A stretch of 11,658 nt of DNA, taken from sequence record MK054218.1; one strand, given 5' to 3'. Positions 1 through 8,204 of this stretch are shown here, one piece after another. The notes below the pieces were generated by a model. The model was not told the DNA's origin and ran no database searches. It worked only from the letters and a program-made list of their open reading frames with translations. Position 1 is the stretch's first letter. Every line of letters starts with the position of its first letter. Both the position numbers and the translations under genes were made by a program.

Positions 1-237
<237 letters not shown>

Positions 238-254
238 TTCGCCTCAAGTATTAT

Positions 255-288
255 GGTTGCCAAAACATGTTTATAAGCATTGGCAACC
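255..288 (-). promoter_or_regulatory. Putative int promoter: TATA-like (C)TTATAAA flanked by a 9-bp inverted repeat
   Basis: GGTTGCCAA (255-263) and TTGGCAACC (280-288) enclose the TATA-like element at 270-277, about 33 nt upstream of the int ATG. Confidence 0.55.
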
Positions 289-539
289 CGTTAATTTTTG
301 CCGTGATTTGCGACGAATTGAAAGAAGACGGCAAAAAGTCCTCGGAAGTAATAATATATGATAATCTTGTTTCTAACGCGTTCAAGTGGACTGTACTTTA
401 CGAGAAGGCAATTATTAAGGTTAAGCAGGCAATAGGTAGGGCAATAAGGGGGCCTCAAGATTCCGCAACAATCTACCTAATTGACAAACGTTTCACATAC
501 AAGAACGTAATGGAGAAGATGGGCTTAGAGGTGGCCTAA
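267..539 (+). pseudogene. C-terminal remnant of a Rad3/XPD/DinG-family SF2 helicase
   Basis: AIIKVKQAIGRAIRGPQDSATIYLIDKRF matches the motif VI region of XPD/DinG helicases (QxxGRxIRxxxDxxxxxLxDxRF). No Walker A, DEAH or Fe-S region is present. The ORF-track 5' extension (45-266) is antisense to int. Confidence 0.8.
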
Positions 540-1133
540 ATGGTTGATAGGGAAACGCTTAGGAGGATTGTCCAAGAAAAATTAAAGAAAAATAAAGACG
601 GAAATAATAACTCAGCGACACAAAATAATTCAAAAAATGAAGTGTCGTTTGATAAAAATTCTCCGGAAGTTCAGAAAGGGTATAATGAAAATGTGTCGTT
701 TGTGTCGCCCAATTTAGTAAGCGACACACGAGAAAAATTCAAAAGCGACACAAACGACACAAATTCCTCTATCTCTCCAAATACTTCCGGAGAATTTTTA
801 GCAGAAGAGGAGAAAGAAATTGAAGACGGAAATAATAACTCAGCGACACAAAATAATTCAAAAAATGAAGTGTCGTTTGATAAAAATTCTCCGGAAGTTC
901 AGACAGAGAAAACCCAAAATGTTACGTTTGTTACGCACAATTTAGATGGCGTAACAAGAGAGAAATTCAAAAGCGTAACAAACGTAACAAATCCCCCTAT
1001 CTCTTCCCAAACTTCCGGAGAATTTAGCTCAGAAGAGAGTGAAAAAATTCAAAAAAGAATTAGTTGTATAGGTTCATTTTCGGCTTTTTCTTTTCTTCTT
1101 TCAAAAGCCTTTCAAAAAATTGCCTTAATATAG
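540..1133 (+). CDS. Low-complexity repeat protein (two 76-aa repeats) carrying an iteron-like DNA array; the C-terminal ~25 aa are probably read-through into the antisense of the next gene
   Basis: ATG directly follows the helicase-remnant stop, with RBS GAGGTGG. The protein repeat mirrors a 228-bp DNA duplication. Confidence 0.5.
   Translation: MVDRETLRRIVQEKLKKNKDGNNNSATQNNSKNEVSFDKNSPEVQKGYNENVSFVSPNLVSDTREKFKSDTNDTNSSISPNTSGEFLAEEEKEIEDGNNNSATQNNSKNEVSFDKNSPEVQTEKTQNVTFVTHNLDGVTREKFKSVTNVTNPPISSQTSGEFSSEESEKIQKRISCIGSFSAFSFLLSKAFQKIALI
595..1050 (+). repeat. Tandem 228-bp duplication (595-822 / 823-1050) with nested inverted repeats
   Basis: 595-675 is identical to 823-903 (81 bp). The remaining 147 bp align without gaps, with 39 mismatches by hand count. 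Inverted repeats: 653-670/783-800 (18 bp), 692-708/745-761 (17 bp), 884-898/1011-1025 (15 bp), 920-936/973-989 (17 bp). Confidence 0.97.
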
Positions 1134-1299
1134 GTACTTTTTCGATAGACAGTTCTTCTTCGGGTTCCATGTATTCCGTATTGTTTTCCTCATTAATATT
1201 TTCCTCTTTCACTATGTACGTAAAGCAGACAGTGACCCATACCCCGTTAGCTAGCCTAAATTCACGTGCTTTTTTCGAATAACTAGCTATTCTTCCCAA
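1060..1299 (-). CDS. Hypothetical protein, 79 aa (early/T5-like orientation); start uncertain (TTG)
   Basis: Purine-rich E/K-rich coding strand. It overlaps the tail of an upstream truncated minus-strand frame, as expected in an operon. Confidence 0.55.
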   Translation of the reverse strand: MGRIASYSKKAREFRLANGVWVTVCFTYIVKEENINEENNTEYMEPEEELSIEKVPILRQFFERLLKEEKKKPKMNLYN

Positions 1300-1343
1300 T
1301 CTTCTTCCGCCTCACTCAACTCCTCATCAATACTCAAAGTTTT
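1287..1343 (-). pseudogene. Acidic C-terminal stub of a lost gene (KTLSIDEELSEAEEDWEE*)
   Basis: Short minus-strand frame with coding-like acidic composition and no suitable start. It begins abruptly where the Cas4-like remnant begins on the other strand. Confidence 0.35.
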
Positions 1344-1346
1344 CTA

Positions 1347-1856
1347 ATGAGACATAACGGTAAAATAAAACAGAATTTACAAACTACAATGAAGATGCAC
1401 ATAGGTTCAGGTCTTCATATGCGTTTGCAATCAATACTTAGAAAGCATGGCTTTGAGGTTGAAAAGAGGGTTGAACGGAAGACGGCTTTGGGCTTTAACA
1501 TTGTAGGCAAAGTTGATGTTTATGACAAAGAAGAGAACACAATATACGAGTTGAAGTATACTCATCATGATAAGCTGGATAACGTTAGGCTCAACAACTA
1601 CCTCAGACAACTTAACTATTACATTGAAATGGCTAACGCTATGGCGGGCTATTTAATAATCGTGCATGCAGATGGTAGGGTGGAAGAGATAAAGAGGGAT
1701 TGGAGTGAGACAGACCTAGAGAGAAGGGCTAACGCTTTCGGGATTTCAGTTGAGGAAAACATCTTACCGCCGAGAAAGGCTAAGCCAGATAGCGAATGTA
1801 TGGAATGCCCCTTCTATAGCTTTTGTTGGAGGGATAGGAATGGAGTCAGGCAGTAA
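1347..1856 (+). CDS. Viral Cas4-like RecB/PD-(D/E)XK nuclease, probably N-terminally truncated
   Basis: GxxxH (GSGLH), GKVD, ELK, QLNYY and a C-terminal CMECPFYSFC cluster. The N-terminal fourth Fe-S cysteine is absent, both in the ORF and in the in-frame sequence just upstream. Confidence 0.88.
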   Translation: MRHNGKIKQNLQTTMKMHIGSGLHMRLQSILRKHGFEVEKRVERKTALGFNIVGKVDVYDKEENTIYELKYTHHDKLDNVRLNNYLRQLNYYIEMANAMAGYLIIVHADGRVEEIKRDWSETDLERRANAFGISVEENILPPRKAKPDSECMECPFYSFCWRDRNGVRQ

Positions 1857-2217
1857 AACGCACCTGAGGAGTAACCATAAGGGGATTACGATTCACGTGA
1901 CTTTGGAAGAACTTGAACGCTATCATTCTCTGACGCCGGAACAGAAAAGAATAATTAGGGCTATTGTTAAAGCGTTAATCCATAACCCCCAGTTGTTAGA
2001 TGAAAGCGGTTATCTCTATAAGTTACTGACAAGTAAAGCAGTATCGCCTTACGTTTGTCCCCTTTGCTTAATGCCATTTTCTTCATCAGTTAGTCTGAAG
2101 CAACACATCCGTTATACGGAACACGCAAAGACTTGTCCCATATGCAAAAAGGAGTTTAGAAACACTGATTCAACCCTAGACCATGTTTGCAAAAAACATA
2201 ATATCTGCGTTAGTTAG
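1840..2217 (+). CDS. Tandem C2H2 zinc-finger DNA-binding protein (SSV1 B129 homolog), 125 aa
   Basis: CPLCLMPFSSSVSLKQHIRYTEH and CPICKKEFRNTDSTLDHVCKKH. ATG 1840 follows GGAGGGATAGGA and is preferred over the track start at 1750. Confidence 0.92.
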   Translation: MESGSKTHLRSNHKGITIHVTLEELERYHSLTPEQKRIIRAIVKALIHNPQLLDESGYLYKLLTSKAVSPYVCPLCLMPFSSSVSLKQHIRYTEHAKTCPICKKEFRNTDSTLDHVCKKHNICVS

Positions 2218-2553
2218 GTGATGTTGATGGATAGGCTAAAGGTCTTATGGCTCATCTTCATTTTAGGTAACTTATTTGATTATGGTGCAACACTTCTTTT
2301 TTCCTATCTTGGAGTGCTTTATATGGATCGCAATGTTTTCATAGGATCTAACACAAGTTTCTTAGACGTTCTGATAACCTTAACCGGTGAGAAGTTGTTA
2401 TTATTAAGTGGAGTTTATTGGTTTACTAAGTTATTCGATTATCTAAAAATCAGTAAGTATAAGTGGATGGGCTTATTGCCTTTTGCAATAATAACTATCC
2501 TTATAGTATGTATACTCGTAATAGCCATTTTACTTTTTTACTTAACTTCTTAG
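2218..2553 (+). CDS. Small integral membrane protein (3 predicted TM, DUF5658-like N-L-x-D-x-x-x-T pattern); true start may be ATG 2227
   Basis: Hydrophobic segments and GNLFDYGAT. RBS GGTGA at 2216-2221. Confidence 0.75.
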   Translation: MMLMDRLKVLWLIFILGNLFDYGATLLFSYLGVLYMDRNVFIGSNTSFLDVLITLTGEKLLLLSGVYWFTKLFDYLKISKYKWMGLLPFAIITILIVCILVIAILLFYLTS

Positions 2554-2567
2554 GCCCTTTATAAAGT
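2551..2567 (+). promoter_or_regulatory. BRE/TATA promoter TAGGCCCTTTATAAAGT (T3-like), copy 1 of 3
   Basis: TTTATAAA lies about 25 nt upstream of the leaderless ATG 2591. Identical 17-mer at 4223 and 8188. Confidence 0.88.
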
Positions 2568-2590
2568 TACACTTTCCTTTTTCGCTTACA

Positions 2591-3511
2591 ATGAGGAAGT
2601 ACCTACTAATGGGAGTTTCGCTATTCCTACTATCTCTAATCTTTCTAAACGCATCTGCGCTAACGGCAAGCCAACTAGGTGCAAACTATACGGAAAGTTC
2701 GATCGGTACTAAATTCGTGACTGCTATTGCATATTCTGATGAATATCAAGGCATCGGCCCATGTCCTCCGTATTATGGCTATTGGCCTAACACAATTATC
2801 AGTGCCAATGAGAATATCTATCTGCCAAATAGTTTCACATACTATCCATCTGTTACGGGAACGGATCAGATAATAGTTGGAGTAGGGATAGGTAGTAACG
2901 GAGTTTATATGCCTACCTATCCCGCCTGGAATCTCAACGATCTTCCCAACGAGACAATATACGCCGGGTTCATGTTCACAGTCAAACCTGATAATTCATA
3001 CTCTGTTTCATATATAGCCTTCGGTACTGGTCCAAATCTTTCCTATATAAACATTATTAATGGGAACGTGCCGAAAGGTTCTATAAGCTGGTTATATGTC
3101 CAAGAATACTATAATCAAGGTAAACAAACATTAACAATTACATGGATAGTGCACTATACAAACAATTCACAGTTCACTTATACCACGATACTATCCTATG
3201 TTGTATATTCATGGTCCGCTTTGTCATTTGTGGCTACAAATTCGATTGGTACAAACGAGTTTAACCAATTACCATTCGTAAATGGTGGTTCTGTTAGTTT
3301 CTGGTTCTCATACTTATCTAATGGCCAAATATATGGTGGGCCTGGGACTCCTGCATCGGGGACATCTATTTATGCAGAGGTATATTCATTGTCAAAAACA
3401 TCTTACGCAAACTCTATGCTTTCTAATGTGACTAGCGCAAGTGGAGTTACCGGAAGCTGGTCCTATACATTTTCCTTCTCTGAGAACGGGCAAACTACCT
3501 ACGGGCTATAA
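2591..3511 (+). CDS. Secreted beta-rich S/T/Y/N/G-rich protein, 306 aa (positional analog of SSV1 A291); candidate viral toxin
   Basis: Signal peptide MRKYLLMGVSLFLLSLIFLNASA, several N-x-S/T sequons, no C-terminal membrane anchor, own strong promoter. Confidence 0.8.
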   Translation: MRKYLLMGVSLFLLSLIFLNASALTASQLGANYTESSIGTKFVTAIAYSDEYQGIGPCPPYYGYWPNTIISANENIYLPNSFTYYPSVTGTDQIIVGVGIGSNGVYMPTYPAWNLNDLPNETIYAGFMFTVKPDNSYSVSYIAFGTGPNLSYINIINGNVPKGSISWLYVQEYYNQGKQTLTITWIVHYTNNSQFTYTTILSYVVYSWSALSFVATNSIGTNEFNQLPFVNGGSVSFWFSYLSNGQIYGGPGTPASGTSIYAEVYSLSKTSYANSMLSNVTSASGVTGSWSYTFSFSENGQTTYGL

Positions 3512-3512
3512 A

Positions 3513-3522
3513 AATTTATATG
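3513..3522 (+). promoter_or_regulatory. Putative TATA box (AATTTATATG) for a leaderless transcript of ORF 3545 (Tx-like)
   Basis: TTTATAT at 3515-3521, about 24 nt before ATG 3545. Confidence 0.55.
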
Positions 3523-3544
3523 TTTCAAGGTAATTCTTTTTTTT

Positions 3545-3814
3545 ATGGATAAGAAACTAAAGGCTGAACTATTGTTCTTAATACCTTTTACTTTTTGTTG
3601 GTTTATCCTTTTTTGGGTCTACAGTTATAGTATATTTACCATAATTTTTTTCATACCTTTTATGTCTCTATCTTACATAGGCTTTCTAAGACTCTTAAAG
3701 AACGGATATAAAAACTTCCCTTACTATAGAACTATAATGATAACATTAGGTTTGATTACGACAATATCCACGATAATTGTAATATACATTTTTACTCATC
3801 CTCTTCCAATATGA
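3545..3814 (+). CDS. Small membrane protein, 89 aa, about 3 TM helices
   Basis: Three F/I/L-rich segments separated by basic loops; very AT-rich DNA. Confidence 0.75.
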   Translation: MDKKLKAELLFLIPFTFCWFILFWVYSYSIFTIIFFIPFMSLSYIGFLRLLKNGYKNFPYYRTIMITLGLITTISTIIVIYIFTHPLPI

Positions 3815-3859
3815 TTAATGGTGGTCTAATGTCGGTACTACATATGTGTAAGGAATAGC

Positions 3860-3883
3860 TTTTTTACTTTTTTCTTTTTTTTT
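3860..3883 (+). terminator. Oligo-T tract; putative archaeal terminator or promoter-proximal element
   Basis: TTTTTTACTTTTTTCTTTTTTTTT between ORFs 3545 and 3890. Confidence 0.45.
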
Positions 3884-3889
3884 AAAAAC

Positions 3890-4225
3890 ATGGAATTCCT
3901 TTCACTTCTAATTTTCGTTTCCGGAATAATCGTGGCTTTCTTAACTCTTTATTTCTCACCGGATTTTGGAAGGGTAAAACCAAATAAAAGAAGCCTATCG
4001 ACCATATTTCTATCAATAGCCCTTACGGGAATAGGTTTATGGCTCTATTCCATCGACCATCCAACATATATAGCACAACCATATGAAGGATCGCCAGAAG
4101 GGCTTTATTATGGCCCGTCACCTACTATACATGTTCCCCCACCATGGTACGCTAACTTATGGCCATTCATAATCGCAATAGGCTTAAGTATACTTATAAT
4201 TCCAATGATTAGACCCAAAAATTAG
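3890..4225 (+). CDS. Small membrane protein, 111 aa, 3 TM with a Pro/Tyr-rich loop
   Basis: Hydrophobic segments at the N-terminus, middle and C-terminus; loop QPYEGSPEGLYYGPSPTIHVPPPWY. Confidence 0.78.
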   Translation: MEFLSLLIFVSGIIVAFLTLYFSPDFGRVKPNKRSLSTIFLSIALTGIGLWLYSIDHPTYIAQPYEGSPEGLYYGPSPTIHVPPPWYANLWPFIIAIGLSILIIPMIRPKN

Positions 4226-4239
4226 GCCCTTTATAAAGT
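4223..4239 (+). promoter_or_regulatory. BRE/TATA promoter TAGGCCCTTTATAAAGT for the VP4 operon, copy 2 of 3
   Basis: Identical 17-mer, 22 nt before ATG 4261. Confidence 0.88.
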
Positions 4240-4260
4240 CATTCAATTTTTTATCGCTTA

Positions 4261-6627
4261 ATGAAGTGGGGACTATTATTCGCTATTTTCTTTATATCTC
4301 TTTTTTCTCTCAACTCCTTAGCTTTACTTATTGGAGGAGGGCCTAATAATAGCGGTGCGGGAGTTTATACTCAAACTATAACGGTAAATGGAGGAACAGT
4401 AAGCACGAAAGTTAATGGTTCAACGCTCTCTAATGCACCTTGGCTTAACCCAACTTACGTTTCGATATACAACACTTACTACCTCCAAGTTTTGCCGAAT
4501 CAAGAATATATTAGTAATAACGTATCTCTTTCTCTTTCATCATCACAAATCGCTCTAAACGTCACATGGTTGCTAGCTTCATCTAGCAATACCGGATCCT
4601 ACGGTTCAATCGCCATAGGCTACGGTGTAAATTTCCCTTCAGGCTTTACGACTAGCTATGCACCCGCATTACCTTACGCCTCCGATGGGATTGTGGTTTA
4701 TCTGGAAAAAGGGAGTTTCCCAACGTATAGAATATTTGTATACTTTGACGGTGTGAAACAGTTAAACGTGTCTGTGGGCTCAATCAGTGTTGGGCAACAA
4801 ATAGGTTTAGGGTTCTGGTACTTACCCGCTTCAAACCAACTTTACGTTTATTACTATAACGGTACTCTAAAGACTTTTTCAATAATACCGGGCCTATCGT
4901 TGAATACCGTAAATAGTAATTATGTTATTGACGCTCAGAATATTGGGCCGGGTTTTGGGTACGGTCAGTGGGTGATAATGCGTTATCAATATTTTACACA
5001 AGTTACGGCACAACTGACTATTAGTTATTTCGCATTATCGTATAACATCTATCATTTCTTAATGGCCTATGCGGGTGCGGGGAATCCCGTAAACATTTCA
5101 GGTGCATTATATAGCATATCGGGCATAGTTTCACAGAAAAACTTTACAATAACGGGTATACAACAAGGCTTAGCATACACCTTTAACATTTTAGGGAAGT
5201 CAAACGGATTATATTTACTTTACACGGGGCCAATCGAAGGTAACCCACCAACATGGTACGTAAACGTAACCATAGGGCTTCAAATCGTTACATCTCAAGT
5301 AACGATAAACTACAACCTAACTATACCCGTAATTGTTGAGGGCTATGCACTATATCCTAGCGTCAATTTGCCTAGCGGAACTTATCTAAGCGGGCAAACA
5401 ATCAGTTTTACACTGACCAACTTCGTAGGTTATCCCTCAAATCTAGGTTATTATACTGCAGTATCAGAGCGGGCTAACGTATCAATAAACGGTGTTACGT
5501 ACCCGATACCCTATAGTTTTACGCCTATAGTCCAAGTACCTACTACTTATTACTACACAGTAATCGTAACTGAAGGTCCAATATCAATGATAGATTATAG
5601 TGGTAGTTTCACAGTATTGCCCGCACAGAGTTACCCCGTGTTATTCGTTACTTCTTATCCTAGAATCGGGATATTAGGGCAAACGATAACGATAACGTTC
5701 CAATTCACTTACAATAGTCCCGTCTCGAATGTAACACAATCCGCATTAACGCAAACTACTAGCACTTTCGCATTTACTTATGCATCTATAATAACGTCGT
5801 CATCATTGATACAATTCAAGGCGTATTGGCTTAATGCAAGTGATGGTTTAATAATCATTACGCAAAGTCAGAATTTCTTAATCCCCTTCAACTATGTAGG
5901 GCTAACATGGTACAATAATAGCGTTAATACAGTGCAGATTAACGTTATTAATAACGCGTTACAATTAACGATTAACGGTGGTACGCTTAACATAGCTAAC
6001 TCATCTAAAGTGATAGGCTTAGGCTTCTACTACGGTGCGGGGAAACTTGTACTGAACTGGTTCTTCGTTAGCGGTATCGTTTTACAAAGTGCTACGGCTA
6101 ACCAAGCATATATAATATTGATCGGGACTAACCCATCAACATTGACACAATATGTAACGGGTTACACTAACGCTAGCGGTTTCGGAAACGTAACGCTAAA
6201 ACTATCCTATAGTCCTTATGAGCTTATTGACGTATATTGGTACGGCGTTACATATCAGATACTAAACATTAGCGTTTCAAATACTACTACAGTAAGCAGC
6301 ACCACCACAGTGAATACCACTACTCTTAACTACAACTACACTAAGCCGTTTAGTAATAACATTGCCCCTAACTCCTCACTATATAACTTCTCTCAATACC
6401 AACCATGGGCGGAAATCATCGGGATTGTGGTTACTTTACTTATCGCGTTACTAGGTTGGAAATTCGGCGGTAGTGCGGGTGCATCGGGTGGTGCGGTTAT
6501 GGGGCTAATCGCCACTGCATATTTGGGGCTATTACCATGGTACATCTTTTATGTCTTTGTACTTGGCATAGCGCTACTGTTAGCGAAAACGTTTGTGGAT
6601 AGGTTTATGGGGAGGGAGGAAGAATGA
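4261..6627 (+). CDS. vp4: Virion tail/receptor-binding glycoprotein VP4 (SSV1 C792 homolog), 788 aa
   Basis: Signal peptide, long beta-rich N/T/S/Y body with many sequons, Thr-rich linker, C-terminal TM helices; size and position match. Confidence 0.92.
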
Positions 6628-6866
6628 CGGACGCAATTTCCCTAGCTTTACAAACCGGTTTAGGGCCGGTAATTGCGGTCGTTATTATCATAGGAATGAT
6701 GGGACTAACATACAAGATGGCGGGCAAAGTACCGGCGATTCTTGTAGGTATAGCCTCAACTTTCACCCTAACTTTCATGAATTTCTTACCGCTTTTTTGG
6801 GGCGTTGCGATCATTTTGGGTCTGATAGCCGGGTTAATCTTAGGAGGTGGTAGGGATGGGGACTAA
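6624..6866 (+). CDS. Small membrane protein (SSV1 B78 homolog), 80 aa
   Basis: ATGA overlap with the VP4 stop; hydrophobic; syntenic. Confidence 0.88.
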
Positions 6867-7356
6867 GCTAATAGTATACGTCCTATTGTTTGACGTCTTT
6901 CTAGCGTTAATGGTAGGTGCTTACGGCGGTATAACGCCACCGTCAATTCCACCGATACCTTCATATAGTTTTGACCAAGCTTTAGCGTCATCAATTGTAT
7001 GGACTGTGGGGTGGCCACCCATTACGTTATGGGGGCCCGTGACACTTATTCCGCCGTTTTCCATTTTAGGGGCTAACTTTCCGGGACTAACTTTACCGGG
7101 TGTAACGATACCGGGTGTAACATTGTTTAGTATATCGTTTTCATGGTTGGCCCCAATCCTTTACCTGATAGGTTGGCTAACGTGGATGTTTCAGACAACC
7201 GATAGTGTTTTAGGGTATCTAATATCTATATTCACTTCTTCTATAGGATTGTTAGCGAATGTACCGACAGTAGGGCCGTTTTTGACGGCTTTCGTTTTGA
7301 TTGTCAATTTCATCCTCATTTGGGAAGTGGTGAAATTGATAAGGGGTGGGCCATGA
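6856..7356 (+). CDS. Membrane protein (SSV1 C166 homolog), 166 aa from ATG 6856
   Basis: [33 protein letters not shown]; Pro-rich region; RBS GGAGGTGG; syntenic. Confidence 0.9.
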   Translation: MGTKLIVYVLLFDVFLALMVGAYGGITPPSIPPIPSYSFDQALASSIVWTVGWPPITLWGPVTLIPPFSILGANFPGLTLPGVTIPGVTLFSISFSWLAPILYLIGWLTWMFQTTDSVLGYLISIFTSSIGLLANVPTVGPFLTAFVLIVNFILIWEVVKLIRGGP

Positions 7357-7697
7357 CTTATAACGCTAATGAGATTAGGGCTAAGATACTAAGGCGTAAA
7401 ATCTTAGAGCTTATTGTGGAAAACTACGTACTCTCTGCTTCTCTCATCTCTCACGCACTGCTTTTGAGCTATGCAACAGTGCTAAGACACCTCAGAATCC
7501 TTAACGAAGAAGGATACATAGAGTTGTACAAAGAAGGTAGGACGTTATATGCTAAAATTAAAGAGAACTCTAAACAAATTCAGATTCTGAATTCAGAACT
7601 GGAGGGGTTTAAAAAGCTTAGCGACAAGCCCCTATTGACCAAGTATGAGCCTAGTACTATTGCAAAGACCAAAGCTAAGAAAGGGCGAAGCAACTAA
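7353..7697 (+). CDS. Winged-helix (ArsR-like) DNA-binding protein (SSV1 B115 homolog), 114 aa
   Basis: RRKILELI...[39 protein letters not shown] wHTH pattern; ATGA overlap with the C166 stop. Confidence 0.9.
7601..7616 (+). promoter_or_regulatory. Capsid operon promoter (T1/T2-like) embedded in the B115 3' end
   Basis: GGAGGGG-TTTAAAAA (TATA at 7608-7615), about 30 nt upstream of the VP1 ATG. Confidence 0.7.
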
Positions 7698-7908
7698 CAT
7701 AGGAGCAATTTTAGGGCTATTCATCTTTATACTTATAGGCATAGTACTATTGCCCGTCATCGTTAGCCAAGTAAATAACTTGACTTCCGGTACTGCACCT
7801 AGCGTAACCGGCACAAACGCCACACTCTTACAACTAGTCCCACTGTTCTATATCCTAGTCTTAATCATAGTCCCCGCCGTAGTGGCGTACAAGATTTACA
7901 AAGAGTAA
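7645..7908 (+). CDS. vp1: Major capsid protein VP1 precursor, 87 aa (14-aa leader, mature protein EATNIG...)
   Basis: KG|[73 protein letters not shown]; two TM helices and two sequons. An in-frame TGA at 7636 bounds the ORF. Confidence 0.97.
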
Positions 7909-8128
7909 AGGTGTGAGGGATGGAAATCAGTTTAAAGCAAATAATTTTTTTGACTATCTTCATCGTTTTAGGTATAGCGTTATTATCGCCAATTGTTAGT
8001 TACGTAAATTTGCTAACCACACCGTCTTTCACAACTGTTTCAGGTACTGTGACGCAAACTAATCCTAACCCGCAATACGTAGGAAGCTCAAACGCACCCA
8101 TCTTACAACTAGTCCCACTGTTCTATAT
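7826..8128 (+). repeat. 28-bp exact direct repeat shared by vp1 (7826-7853) and vp3 (8101-8128)
   Basis: TCTTACAACTAGTCCCACTGTTCTATAT at both sites, 275 bp apart. Confidence 0.95.
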
Positions 8129-8186
8129 ACTTGTACTGATAGTTGTACCGGCGGTTGTAGCGTATAGGATATACAAGTCTGACTGA
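7920..8186 (+). CDS. vp3: Minor capsid protein VP3, 88 aa
   Basis: VP1 paralog sharing [25 protein letters not shown]; RBS GGTGTGAGGG. Confidence 0.95.
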
Positions 8187-8187
8187 A

Positions 8188-8204
8188 TAGGCCCTTTATA
8201 AAGT
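8188..8204 (+). promoter_or_regulatory. BRE/TATA promoter TAGGCCCTTTATAAAGT (T9-like), copy 3 of 3
   Basis: Identical 17-mer, about 20 nt before ATG 8225. Confidence 0.88.

Follow-up and report, generated by a model that had tools for sequence, protein, structure and literature searches.

The toxin locus of fuselloviruses was described by DeWerff et al. (2021, PMC8628083), who found it to be polymorphic, with nine alleles, and reported that the gene in the toxin slot of Sulfolobus spindle-shaped virus (SSV) 9, re-annotated as B310, encodes a secreted toxin, as does SSV11 p29; "SSV13 p30" and a "short downstream gene p31" were also studied. Products of the gene in this slot (hereafter gene 1) give inhibitory supernatants on their own with virus absent, and it was suggested that the toxin may be its own rescue factor, as in killer yeast (PMC8628083). 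In SSV1, the corresponding gene a291 is required for halos and dispensable for replication and virions (Abshier et al. 2026, PMC13431529). Here, we analyzed the block at positions 2551-4239 of MK054218.1, a stretch of 11,658 nt referred to below as the window, which an earlier reading based on the letters alone (the sequence-only reading) had taken for a secreted toxin gene followed by two small membrane immunity genes. We found that this block is probably the SSV13-type allele, already published, of the T3 "toxin locus" of DeWerff et al.

A phage-collection search identified the window as GenBank record MK054218.1, strain M.06.0.8v1.SSV, the 11,658-bp circular genome of an SSV originating from S. 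islandicus M.06.0.8 of the Mutnovsky volcano, Kamchatka, in which every gene is annotated as "hypothetical protein". Over positions 2551-4239, the window matches SSV13 (MK054205.1, 6836-8524) and four further Mutnovsky records with 100% identity, and a sixth record with 99.9%. Since the block is nucleotide-identical, the published SSV13 expression and cross-killing results apply directly to it. In those assays, SSV13 p30 was strongly transcribed during chronic infection, and its supernatant gave no halo on uninfected RJW002 and inhibited SSV9- and SSV17-infected lawns; lawns infected with SSV13 were inhibited by the toxin of SSV9 but not by that of SSV11, SSV11 p29 inhibited naive cells while p30 did not, and SSV13 p31 alone had no effect (PMC8628083). 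By position, size and signal peptide, the 306-aa open reading frame (ORF) of the block corresponds to p30 and the 89-aa ORF to p31, given that a signal peptide and a length of about 300 aa are combined in just one gene of the SSV13 T3 unit. One point counts against this assignment, namely that the GenBank record does not give the numbers p30 and p31, the gene being simply row 24 of its CDS listing. Among the Mutnovsky SSV records with the MK054218.1 backbone, six have the SSV13-type block and four have a non-homologous B310-type gene 1, so that the locus is indeed polymorphic within the same hot-spring region, as had been supposed.

Three ORFs of 306, 89 and 111 aa were found in the block at the positions given by the sequence-only reading, and their membrane segments were judged from a Kyte-Doolittle hydropathy scan. 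Gene 1 (2591-3511, plus strand), SSV13 p30 by position and 100% identical to the SSV13 gene, encodes a 306-aa secreted protein, predicted to be a beta-sandwich, that matches phrog_11028 with an E-value of 1e-118. Its sole hydrophobic segment is N-terminal (MRK, then the h-region and ...NASA/LTA), which agrees with the earlier description of a secreted-type protein with no membrane anchor, and this N-terminus aligns with the N-termini of other gene 1 alleles. A Sec signal peptide is predicted at residues 1-23 (2591-2659, plus strand) with a putative cleavage site ...NASA/LTASQ, where the Ala-Leu pair occupies the position equivalent to A25/L26 of SSV1. Swapping A25/L26 at the signal-peptide cleavage site of the SSV1 protein abolishes toxin activity (PMC13431529, section 3.7).

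Gene 2 (3545-3814, plus strand), SSV13 p31 by position, encodes the 89-aa protein with three hydrophobic segments (residues ~7-25, 30-48 and 64-82), and gene 3 (3890-4225, plus strand) encodes the 111-aa protein, also with three (~3-21, 37-55 and 89-107). The prediction of two downstream proteins with three transmembrane segments each is thus in accordance with the hydropathy profiles. Gene 3 belongs to the backbone and to the C108/C124 family (phrog_9637, as SSV1 C-124), its product being 82% identical to SSV9 C108 and 77% identical to the SSV3/4/5 homologues. By sequence comparison, the 89-aa and 111-aa proteins are not paralogues of each other. Scans of the three ORFs against Pfam, NCBIfam and PADLOC gave nothing meaningful, and the 89-aa protein has no Pfam or PHROG match; a PADLOC RTasSLATT match (E = 0.011) and a DUF4131 match (E = 0.096) were rejected as hydrophobic-segment noise.

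Synteny and promoter alignment with SSV1, SSV2, SSV9, SSV11 and SSV13 place gene 1 directly 3' of the T3 promoter, with the B129/B111-like genes on one side and VP4 on the other. The statement in the sequence-only reading that a toxin of about 310 aa occupies this slot in SSV9 was right as to the slot, but membership in the SSV9 toxin family was not borne out by BLASTP, profiles or PHROGs. The 306-aa protein has no BLASTP similarity to a B310-type protein, the SSV11-type and B310-type families compared profile against profile gave a probability of 0.1% and no sequence link, and B310-type proteins match phrog_15623. SSV1 A-291 likewise has no sequence similarity to the 306-aa protein, and it has no PHROG match. 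While homology to SSV9 B310 or SSV1 A291 failed, homology to a proven toxin was found in SSV11 p29, with 32% identity over the full length (E = 2e-15). Further relatives of the 306-aa protein are SSV7 A298, the SSV10/Lassen type and SSV2 ORF 305, and phrog_11028 is matched by the window protein, SSV11 p29, the SSV10 type, SSV2 ORF 305 and P0002, a homologue encoded in an S. islandicus chromosome. The phrog_11028-type family is tiny, with 13 representatives at 50% identity among 1.8 billion proteins. Thus, "fusellovirus toxin" is a positional class that falls by sequence into at least three unrelated groups, and the MK054218.1 allele groups with SSV11 p29, not with SSV9 B310.

Two observations on other records touch these gene 1 families. 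The homologue P0002, an intact 302-aa protein with the Gln/Glu motifs described below, is retained in a decayed SSV remnant of a host chromosome (S. islandicus GCA_000245235.2, AHJR01000001.1, 2330296-2339204, genes at 2836-6029 of that stretch) alongside one fragment each of an integrase and of a B129 zinc-finger protein, a B111-like gene, and a truncated VP4 that is 82% identical to the N-domain in the window; it may be a domesticated toxin gene. In the SSV9/SSVK1 record AY423772.1 (around locus 3040-3050), a 1-nt gap relative to MK054217 directly follows the gene 1 start codon and puts the N-terminal 58 codons out of frame, which would explain the former "B252" annotation that DeWerff et al. 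corrected to B310.

The block had been described as bounded by identical 17-mers. The repeat and its spacing are real, with the 18-nt sequence TTAGGCCCTTTATAAAGT present at 2550-2567 and 4222-4239, 1672 nt apart, but it does not mark a special boundary of a toxin cassette. A third exact copy of the 16-nt core AGGCCCTTTATAAAGT, overlooked before, occurs at 8189-8204; three matches to the core in the window compare with 0.01 expected, and none of 200 shuffles reached three. The SSV1 record X07234 contains mapped promoters and transcript starts, with box A T3 5' of A-291, T4 5' of C-792/VP4 and T9 5' of A-82. The three window copies align one-to-one with these SSV1 promoters, down to an ATG about 24 nt downstream. 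The first copy (TTAGGCCCTTTATAAAGT, 2550-2567, plus strand) is a T3-type promoter box (B recognition element/TATA) about 24 nt upstream of the gene 1 ATG and aligns with SSV1 "promoter box A (T3)" and the mapped T3 transcript start. The second (4222-4239, plus strand) is a T4-type box for VP4 that aligns with "promoter box A (T4)" and its transcript start, and the third (8187-8204, plus strand) is a T9-type box upstream of an A-82-like gene that aligns with "promoter box A (T9)".

The same box, GCCCTTTATAAAG, was found 5' of gene 1 and VP4 in SSV2, SSV7, SSV10, SSV11 and MK054217; more specifically, the T3-type box is also 5' of gene 1 in SSV2, SSV11 and MK054217, the T4-type box is 5' of VP4 in SSV2, SSV7, SSV10 and MK054217, and the T3/T4/T9 boxes are conserved in all SSVs examined. 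Given this one-to-one alignment with SSV1 and the presence of the same box across SSVs, the "identical promoter repeats" are common fusellovirus promoters. As judged from these alignments, the regulatory element is common to three fusellovirus transcription units and is nothing special to the toxin cassette. A separate TATA box had also been assigned to the 89-aa ORF, and a TATA-like TTTATAT is present there (3516-3522, plus strand), 23-29 nt upstream of the ATG. Its promoter role is plausible, since SSV2 ORF 126, the 89-aa homologue, has a similar box at the same distance upstream.

To define what is exchanged between genomes, the window was compared by blastn with the near-isogenic provirus MK054217. 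The two are collinear over 1-2607 at 98.4% identity, show no homology over 2608-3876, and are homologous again from 3877. In a three-way alignment, the sequences are identical through ATG AGG AAG, which puts the left junction after window 2599, and agree again from about 3886, so that the right junction falls some 4-10 nt before the start codon of ORF3890. The segment replaced relative to MK054217 (2600-3885, plus strand) thus comprises the body of gene 1, the 89-aa gene and a T-rich spacer; it is about 1.29 kb long in the window and stands against a B310-type gene of about 0.95 kb in MK054217. The 111-aa gene and both promoter boxes sit in the conserved arms around this module. It is a fair conclusion from these alignments that the conserved flanks, promoters included, would serve as homology arms for allele replacement. 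At the right junction, a T-rich tract (3851-3885, plus strand) replaces the TATA-like box upstream of the C108-type gene, as seen when upstream regions and junction were compared. Over window 3851-3889, the box ATATTTTAAG, found 5' of the C108-type gene in MK054217 and SSV9, is gone, with a long T-tract instead. ORF3890 in the MK054218.1 allele probably depends on read-through from upstream promoters.

Comparison with SSV13 gave a longest difference-free run of 1784 nt (2458-4241), against 266 differences, or about 6% divergence, in the rest of the aligned 1335-7221 (4.1 kb), which points to a putative recent exchange of the 2458-4241 region between the 11.6-kb and 16-kb lineages. The identical run ends 2 nt past the second 18-mer, and further 3' the window matches MK054217 while SSV13 matches SSV9. 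We also considered placing the recombination junction at the second 18-mer and discarded this, because the interval 3886-4241 is identical in the window, SSV13 and MK054217 and the right crossover could lie at any point of it. A second module is replaced relative to MK054217, namely the N-terminal domain of VP4 (window 4408-4982, residues ~50-240), with no blastn homology across 4459-4982. The VP4 N-domain of the window is close to those of SSV13 and SSV9. Toxin allele and VP4 N-domain allele do not covary, SSV9 having a B310-type toxin together with the VP4 type of the window.

These boundaries bear on the model of the sequence-only reading, in which a secreted toxin is accompanied by one or two dedicated membrane immunity proteins and the 1672-bp block moves as a unit. 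In bacteriocin and halocin operons, small polytopic membrane proteins typically come after a secreted protein, as they do here, the 89-aa gene is swapped along with gene 1, its sole homologue SSV2 ORF 126 likewise comes after a phrog_11028 gene 1, and the SSV13-identical tract stops almost at the second repeat. However, the segment replaced relative to MK054217 does not run from 18-mer to 18-mer and leaves the 111-aa gene in place, so the claim that the whole block is swapped as a unit was not upheld, and the identity of all three genomes over 3886-4241 keeps the right crossover from being placed at the repeat. The 111-aa protein is moreover 100% identical in MK054217, MK054211, MK054208 and MK054206, all of which have a B310-type gene 1. 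Since its sequence stays the same whichever of two unrelated gene 1 types is next to it, the 111-aa gene belongs to the backbone and is no allele-matched partner. A gene of the C108/C124 family adjoins every gene 1 type just 5' of the VP4 (T4) promoter, and the first membrane segment of the 111-aa protein is conserved in the short pre-VP4 proteins of SSV11, SSV10 and SSV-RH.

Published assays speak to the same model, which DeWerff et al. had already proposed for this gene family and put to the test. SSV9 C108, the close relative of the 111-aa protein, neither killed nor protected when expressed alone, while B310 alone made cells resistant to B310, and cells expressing only SSV11 p29 or SSV13 p30 do grow (PMC8628083). 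In SSV1, a c124 insertion with a291 intact left halo formation unchanged, and the a291-c124 deletion had the phenotype of the a291 deletion alone, so that neither mutant showed an antitoxin phenotype (PMC13431529). The proposal that the small downstream membrane proteins confer immunity is thus contradicted for the 111-aa family, which we regard as a conserved membrane protein tied to the VP4 unit and dispensable in SSV1. For the 89-aa protein, homologues were found only in the six records with the same gene 1 and in SSV2 ORF 126 (46% identity, E = 6e-25), and none accompanies the gene 1 of SSV11, SSV10 and SSV7, which is of the same family. Accordingly, covariation with the toxin allele fails for ORF3890 and gives a mixed picture for ORF3545, which is co-swapped and has the SSV2 homologue, yet is absent next to these gene 1 relatives. 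By its conservation pattern, the 89-aa ORF appears as a real, conserved, allele-linked gene. Taken together, immunity is an unlikely function for either of the small membrane genes, and the toxin-plus-membrane-immunity model as a whole has in our judgement a low probability. An immunity role of the 89-aa gene may nevertheless exist, which is a point against the reading that gene 1 alone protects its carrier; of the two small genes, it alone travels with the allele, and it is therefore the sole sensible remaining candidate for an allele-specific partner.

Another explanation is that the small membrane proteins, and possibly gene 1 itself, serve virion biology, such as VP4 filament anchoring or assembly, budding or superinfection exclusion, with the toxin as a side activity. 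The constant place of a C108/C124-family gene immediately 5' of the VP4 promoter, whatever the gene 1, would fit this, as would the VP4 N-terminal domain being a second swapped module nearby and the weak appearance of a betafusellovirus 806-aa uncharacterised protein (presumed VP4-like) among the gene 1 fold matches. SSV1 lacking a291, or both a291 and c124, nevertheless replicates and its virions look normal (PMC13431529), the inhibitory supernatants mentioned above were obtained from gene 1 products with no virus (PMC8628083), and BLASTP found no similarity between gene 1 and VP4. We consider a primary role in the virion improbable. The idea of the gene 1 toxin as a copy of the VP4 receptor-binding domain was dropped upon the same negative BLASTP comparison. 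The preferred reading is still that the block is the SSV13-type toxin allele.

As to how the product of such an allele might act, gene 1 proteins were modelled and compared with known folds. The model of the window protein, made with AlphaFold2 from a 10-sequence alignment, is all-beta, and its best match in the Protein Data Bank (PDB) is neprosin, a glutamic peptidase, with a template modelling score (TM-score) of 0.36-0.42, followed by lectins, alginate lyases and enzymes of glycoside hydrolase family 16 (GH16). The fold check proposed for the 306-aa protein therefore returned an all-beta model with neprosin on top, from a prediction of poor quality. One structure-modelling alignment comprised 14 sequences, with the GenBank SSV alleles left out. 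In the alignment of the family, we found four motifs that occur together, NWAG, WV[GA], Q-A-G and V-E-A-P. We take these to resemble hallmarks of the G1 glutamic peptidases (eqolisins), and the eqolisin prediction was set down before the homologue P0002 was modelled. The P0002 model is good, with a predicted local distance difference test score (pLDDT) of 81.4 and a predicted TM-score (pTM) of 0.81. Its top three PDB matches are all scytalidoglutamic peptidase (2ifr, 2ifw and 1s2b; E ~3e-6, TM-score 0.52-0.63, target-normalised), and the next are the B. subtilis YncM/CPAVM1 protease and then lectins and GH16.

The eqolisin fold is a beta-sandwich of two seven-stranded antiparallel sheets with the key residues G8, G41, D43, G44, Q53, G55 and E136 (PMC6154417), and the spacing between Gln and Glu is 81-95 residues in 18 members of G1 (PMC3009609 Table 1). 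In P0002, the candidate pair is Gln119, within Q-A-G, and Glu208, 89 residues apart. Among 18 family sequences the pattern is nearly all-or-none: all eight sequences with the Gln have the Glu as well, and seven of the eight without the Gln lack the Glu. SSV11 p29 and seven other homologues keep both residues. In the window protein, the aligned columns hold Tyr and Ala, NWAG is absent, and WVG is without its Trp. Based on these models and alignments, phrog_11028 toxins such as SSV11 p29 could be distant, acid-adapted relatives of glutamic peptidases that kill neighbours by surface proteolysis, and SSV13 p30 could be a naturally inactive "pseudo-toxin" that would persist because it can still bind the target and thereby shield its carrier from toxins of the SSV11 type; we put this forward tentatively, as a possibility that we think rather unlikely. 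A pseudo-toxin, if true, would account for the lack of toxicity to naive cells, for the insensitivity of SSV13 carriers to the SSV11 toxin, and for protection by gene 1 itself. No published link between fuselloviruses and glutamic peptidases was found in the literature searched. The peptidase match together with the all-or-none Gln/Glu pattern gives a first residue-level hypothesis for toxin action and a possible reason for the odd p30 assays.

Several results weigh against the glutamic-peptidase lead. The window protein model is poor (pLDDT 58.6, pTM 0.64), and the TM-scores of P0002 are moderate, with lectins and GH16 within about two orders of magnitude in E-value. Neither the window protein nor the homologues and profiles gave any sequence match to the eqolisin family PF01828 or its solved members, even at E-values up to 10. 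In the homologue, Ser and Pro (WVGLSP) take the places of the eqolisin residues D43 and G44, and the strictly conserved E69 has no evident counterpart. The Gln/Glu pair is missing from SSV2 ORF 305 and the SSV10/SSV7/Lassen type as well, yet SSV10 ORF 299 is treated as a putative toxin, and the link between pair and toxicity rests on two tested proteins. Gln119 and Glu208 are candidate equivalents of Q53 and E136. In addition, a search of two family profiles against PDB sequences with hidden Markov models gave nothing useful, and the viral fold library BFVD returned only generic concanavalin A (ConA)-like domains of tail proteins, with other SSV gene 1 models not recovered.

The same fold matches could also be taken to support a different chemistry, in which gene 1 proteins are GH16-like glycoside hydrolases acting on surface glycan, as proposed for A291, B310 and SSV10 ORF 299; the best Foldseek match of the published AlphaFold3 models is a 1,3-1,4-beta-glucanase, 3AXD (PMC13431529). 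GH16 enzymes and lectins are among the fold matches obtained here as well, with E-values from 5e-4 to 3e-3. The GH16 motif ExDx(x)E, however, is present in none of the 12 gene 1 proteins examined, the A291 and B310 types included, and no acidic residue is invariant in the alignment of the family. In the fold matches of the phrog_11028 family, GH16 ranks under glutamic peptidases and lectins, and a ConA-like sandwich is common to lectins, lyases, peptidases and glucanases, so that the fold alone assigns no chemistry. We thus hold a GH16-like activity of these proteins to be very unlikely.

The locus probably works as follows. The conserved T3 promoter drives an almost leaderless gene 1 mRNA, whose product of about 300 aa would be exported by the host Sec system and presumably cleaved at ...ASA/L. 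In the published assays, protection of the producer came from gene 1 itself and not from the small membrane genes. New alleles may enter by homologous recombination in the conserved flanks, with the B111-like gene, promoter and start codon as the left arm and the C108-type gene and T4 promoter as the right arm. The gene 1 family may have descended from, or converged on, an eqolisin-like beta-sandwich with the candidate Gln/Glu pair. With Tyr and Ala in place of Gln and Glu, the MK054218.1 allele would have lost this pair and would probably act by binding a surface target instead of by catalysis. Such a binding mode would fit the lack of harm to naive cells as well as cross-protection from the toxin of SSV11 type, its homologue.

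The gene order of the window is of the alphafusellovirus type. A Cas4-like nuclease gene, a gene for a C2H2 zinc-finger protein (B-129 type) and a 111-aa B111-like gene precede the toxin block, and 3' of it are the gene for the 788-aa VP4, putative VP1/VP3 coat genes, a set of genes in synteny with the T9 region of SSV1 and, on the opposite strand, the integrase gene. VP4 (4261-6627, plus strand), an end-filament protein according to its phrog_6848 match (E = 0), forms the right bound of the toxin locus. The virus-encoded Cas4-like PD-(D/E)XK nuclease lies at window 1347-1856 and matches Pfam Cas_Cas4 just over the gathering score (E = 9e-5). A 228-bp tandem duplication (82% identity) was found at 589-1044 within a 197-aa ORF (540-1133), whose product has two Asn/Ser/Thr-rich repeats, and the same DNA stretch holds several inverted repeats. 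The presumed coat genes at 7645-7908 and 7920-8186, assigned to VP1/VP3 by position only, have in common a 91-nt stretch with 77% identity that encodes the C-terminal membrane segment, and the pair look like paralogues. Window 1-1334 has no match in SSV13 3836-5619, the 1.8 kb preceding its Cas4-like gene, and MK054218.1 is about 4.5 kb smaller than SSV13. Six records of this kind, of roughly 11.3-11.9 kb, come from S. islandicus genomes.

In comparison with known systems, the closest is SSV13 (MK054205.1), where the whole block is nucleotide-identical and the surrounding genome differs (16.2 kb, versus 11.66 kb here). SSV11 p29 (MK054237.1) has the same slot, size and type of signal peptide as the 306-aa protein and belongs to the same phrog_11028 family; it keeps NWAG, WV[GA], QAG and VEAP, whereas the window protein has FVTA, GVG, YAG and VATN at these places, and it is followed by a 76-aa single-pass protein, in contrast to the 89-aa gene here. 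B310/C108 of SSV9 (SSVK1) share position, transcript and promoter with the block, but B310 belongs to phrog_15623 and has no detectable sequence relationship with the 306-aa protein, and the B310-type loci examined (SSV9, SSV4 and MK054217) have no 89-aa gene. SSV1 a291/c124 occupies the same slot under the mapped T3 promoter and has a similar Ala-Leu site in the signal peptide, while A291 is dissimilar to the 306-aa protein. Outside the fuselloviruses, the best structural matches of the phrog_11028 family are eqolisins (MEROPS G1, e.g. 2IFW) and neprosin (G3), beta-sandwich enzymes that are secreted and active in acid; the candidate Gln-x-Gly and Glu have a G1-like spacing, several residues that are hallmarks of G1 are absent, and the window allele has neither candidate residue. 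By an analogy drawn by DeWerff et al. (PMC8628083), the producer may be protected by the toxin gene's own product, as in killer yeast, where immunity comes from the unprocessed toxin precursor, and halocin C8, where one precursor gives a secreted toxic peptide and an immunity protein; SSV proteins are known to be processed only by signal-peptide removal.

Earlier papers already cover the locus and its polymorphism, the hypothesis of a toxin-antitoxin system and the way the exact SSV13 allele behaves, and the block is no new system. What the present comparison adds is the assignment of the allele to a sequence family, the exact swap boundaries, the finding that the 111-aa gene is not allele-linked, the identity of the repeats as promoters, and the glutamic-peptidase lead with its candidate pair lost in this allele, all of them clarifications relevant to virus-mediated killing in Sulfolobus.

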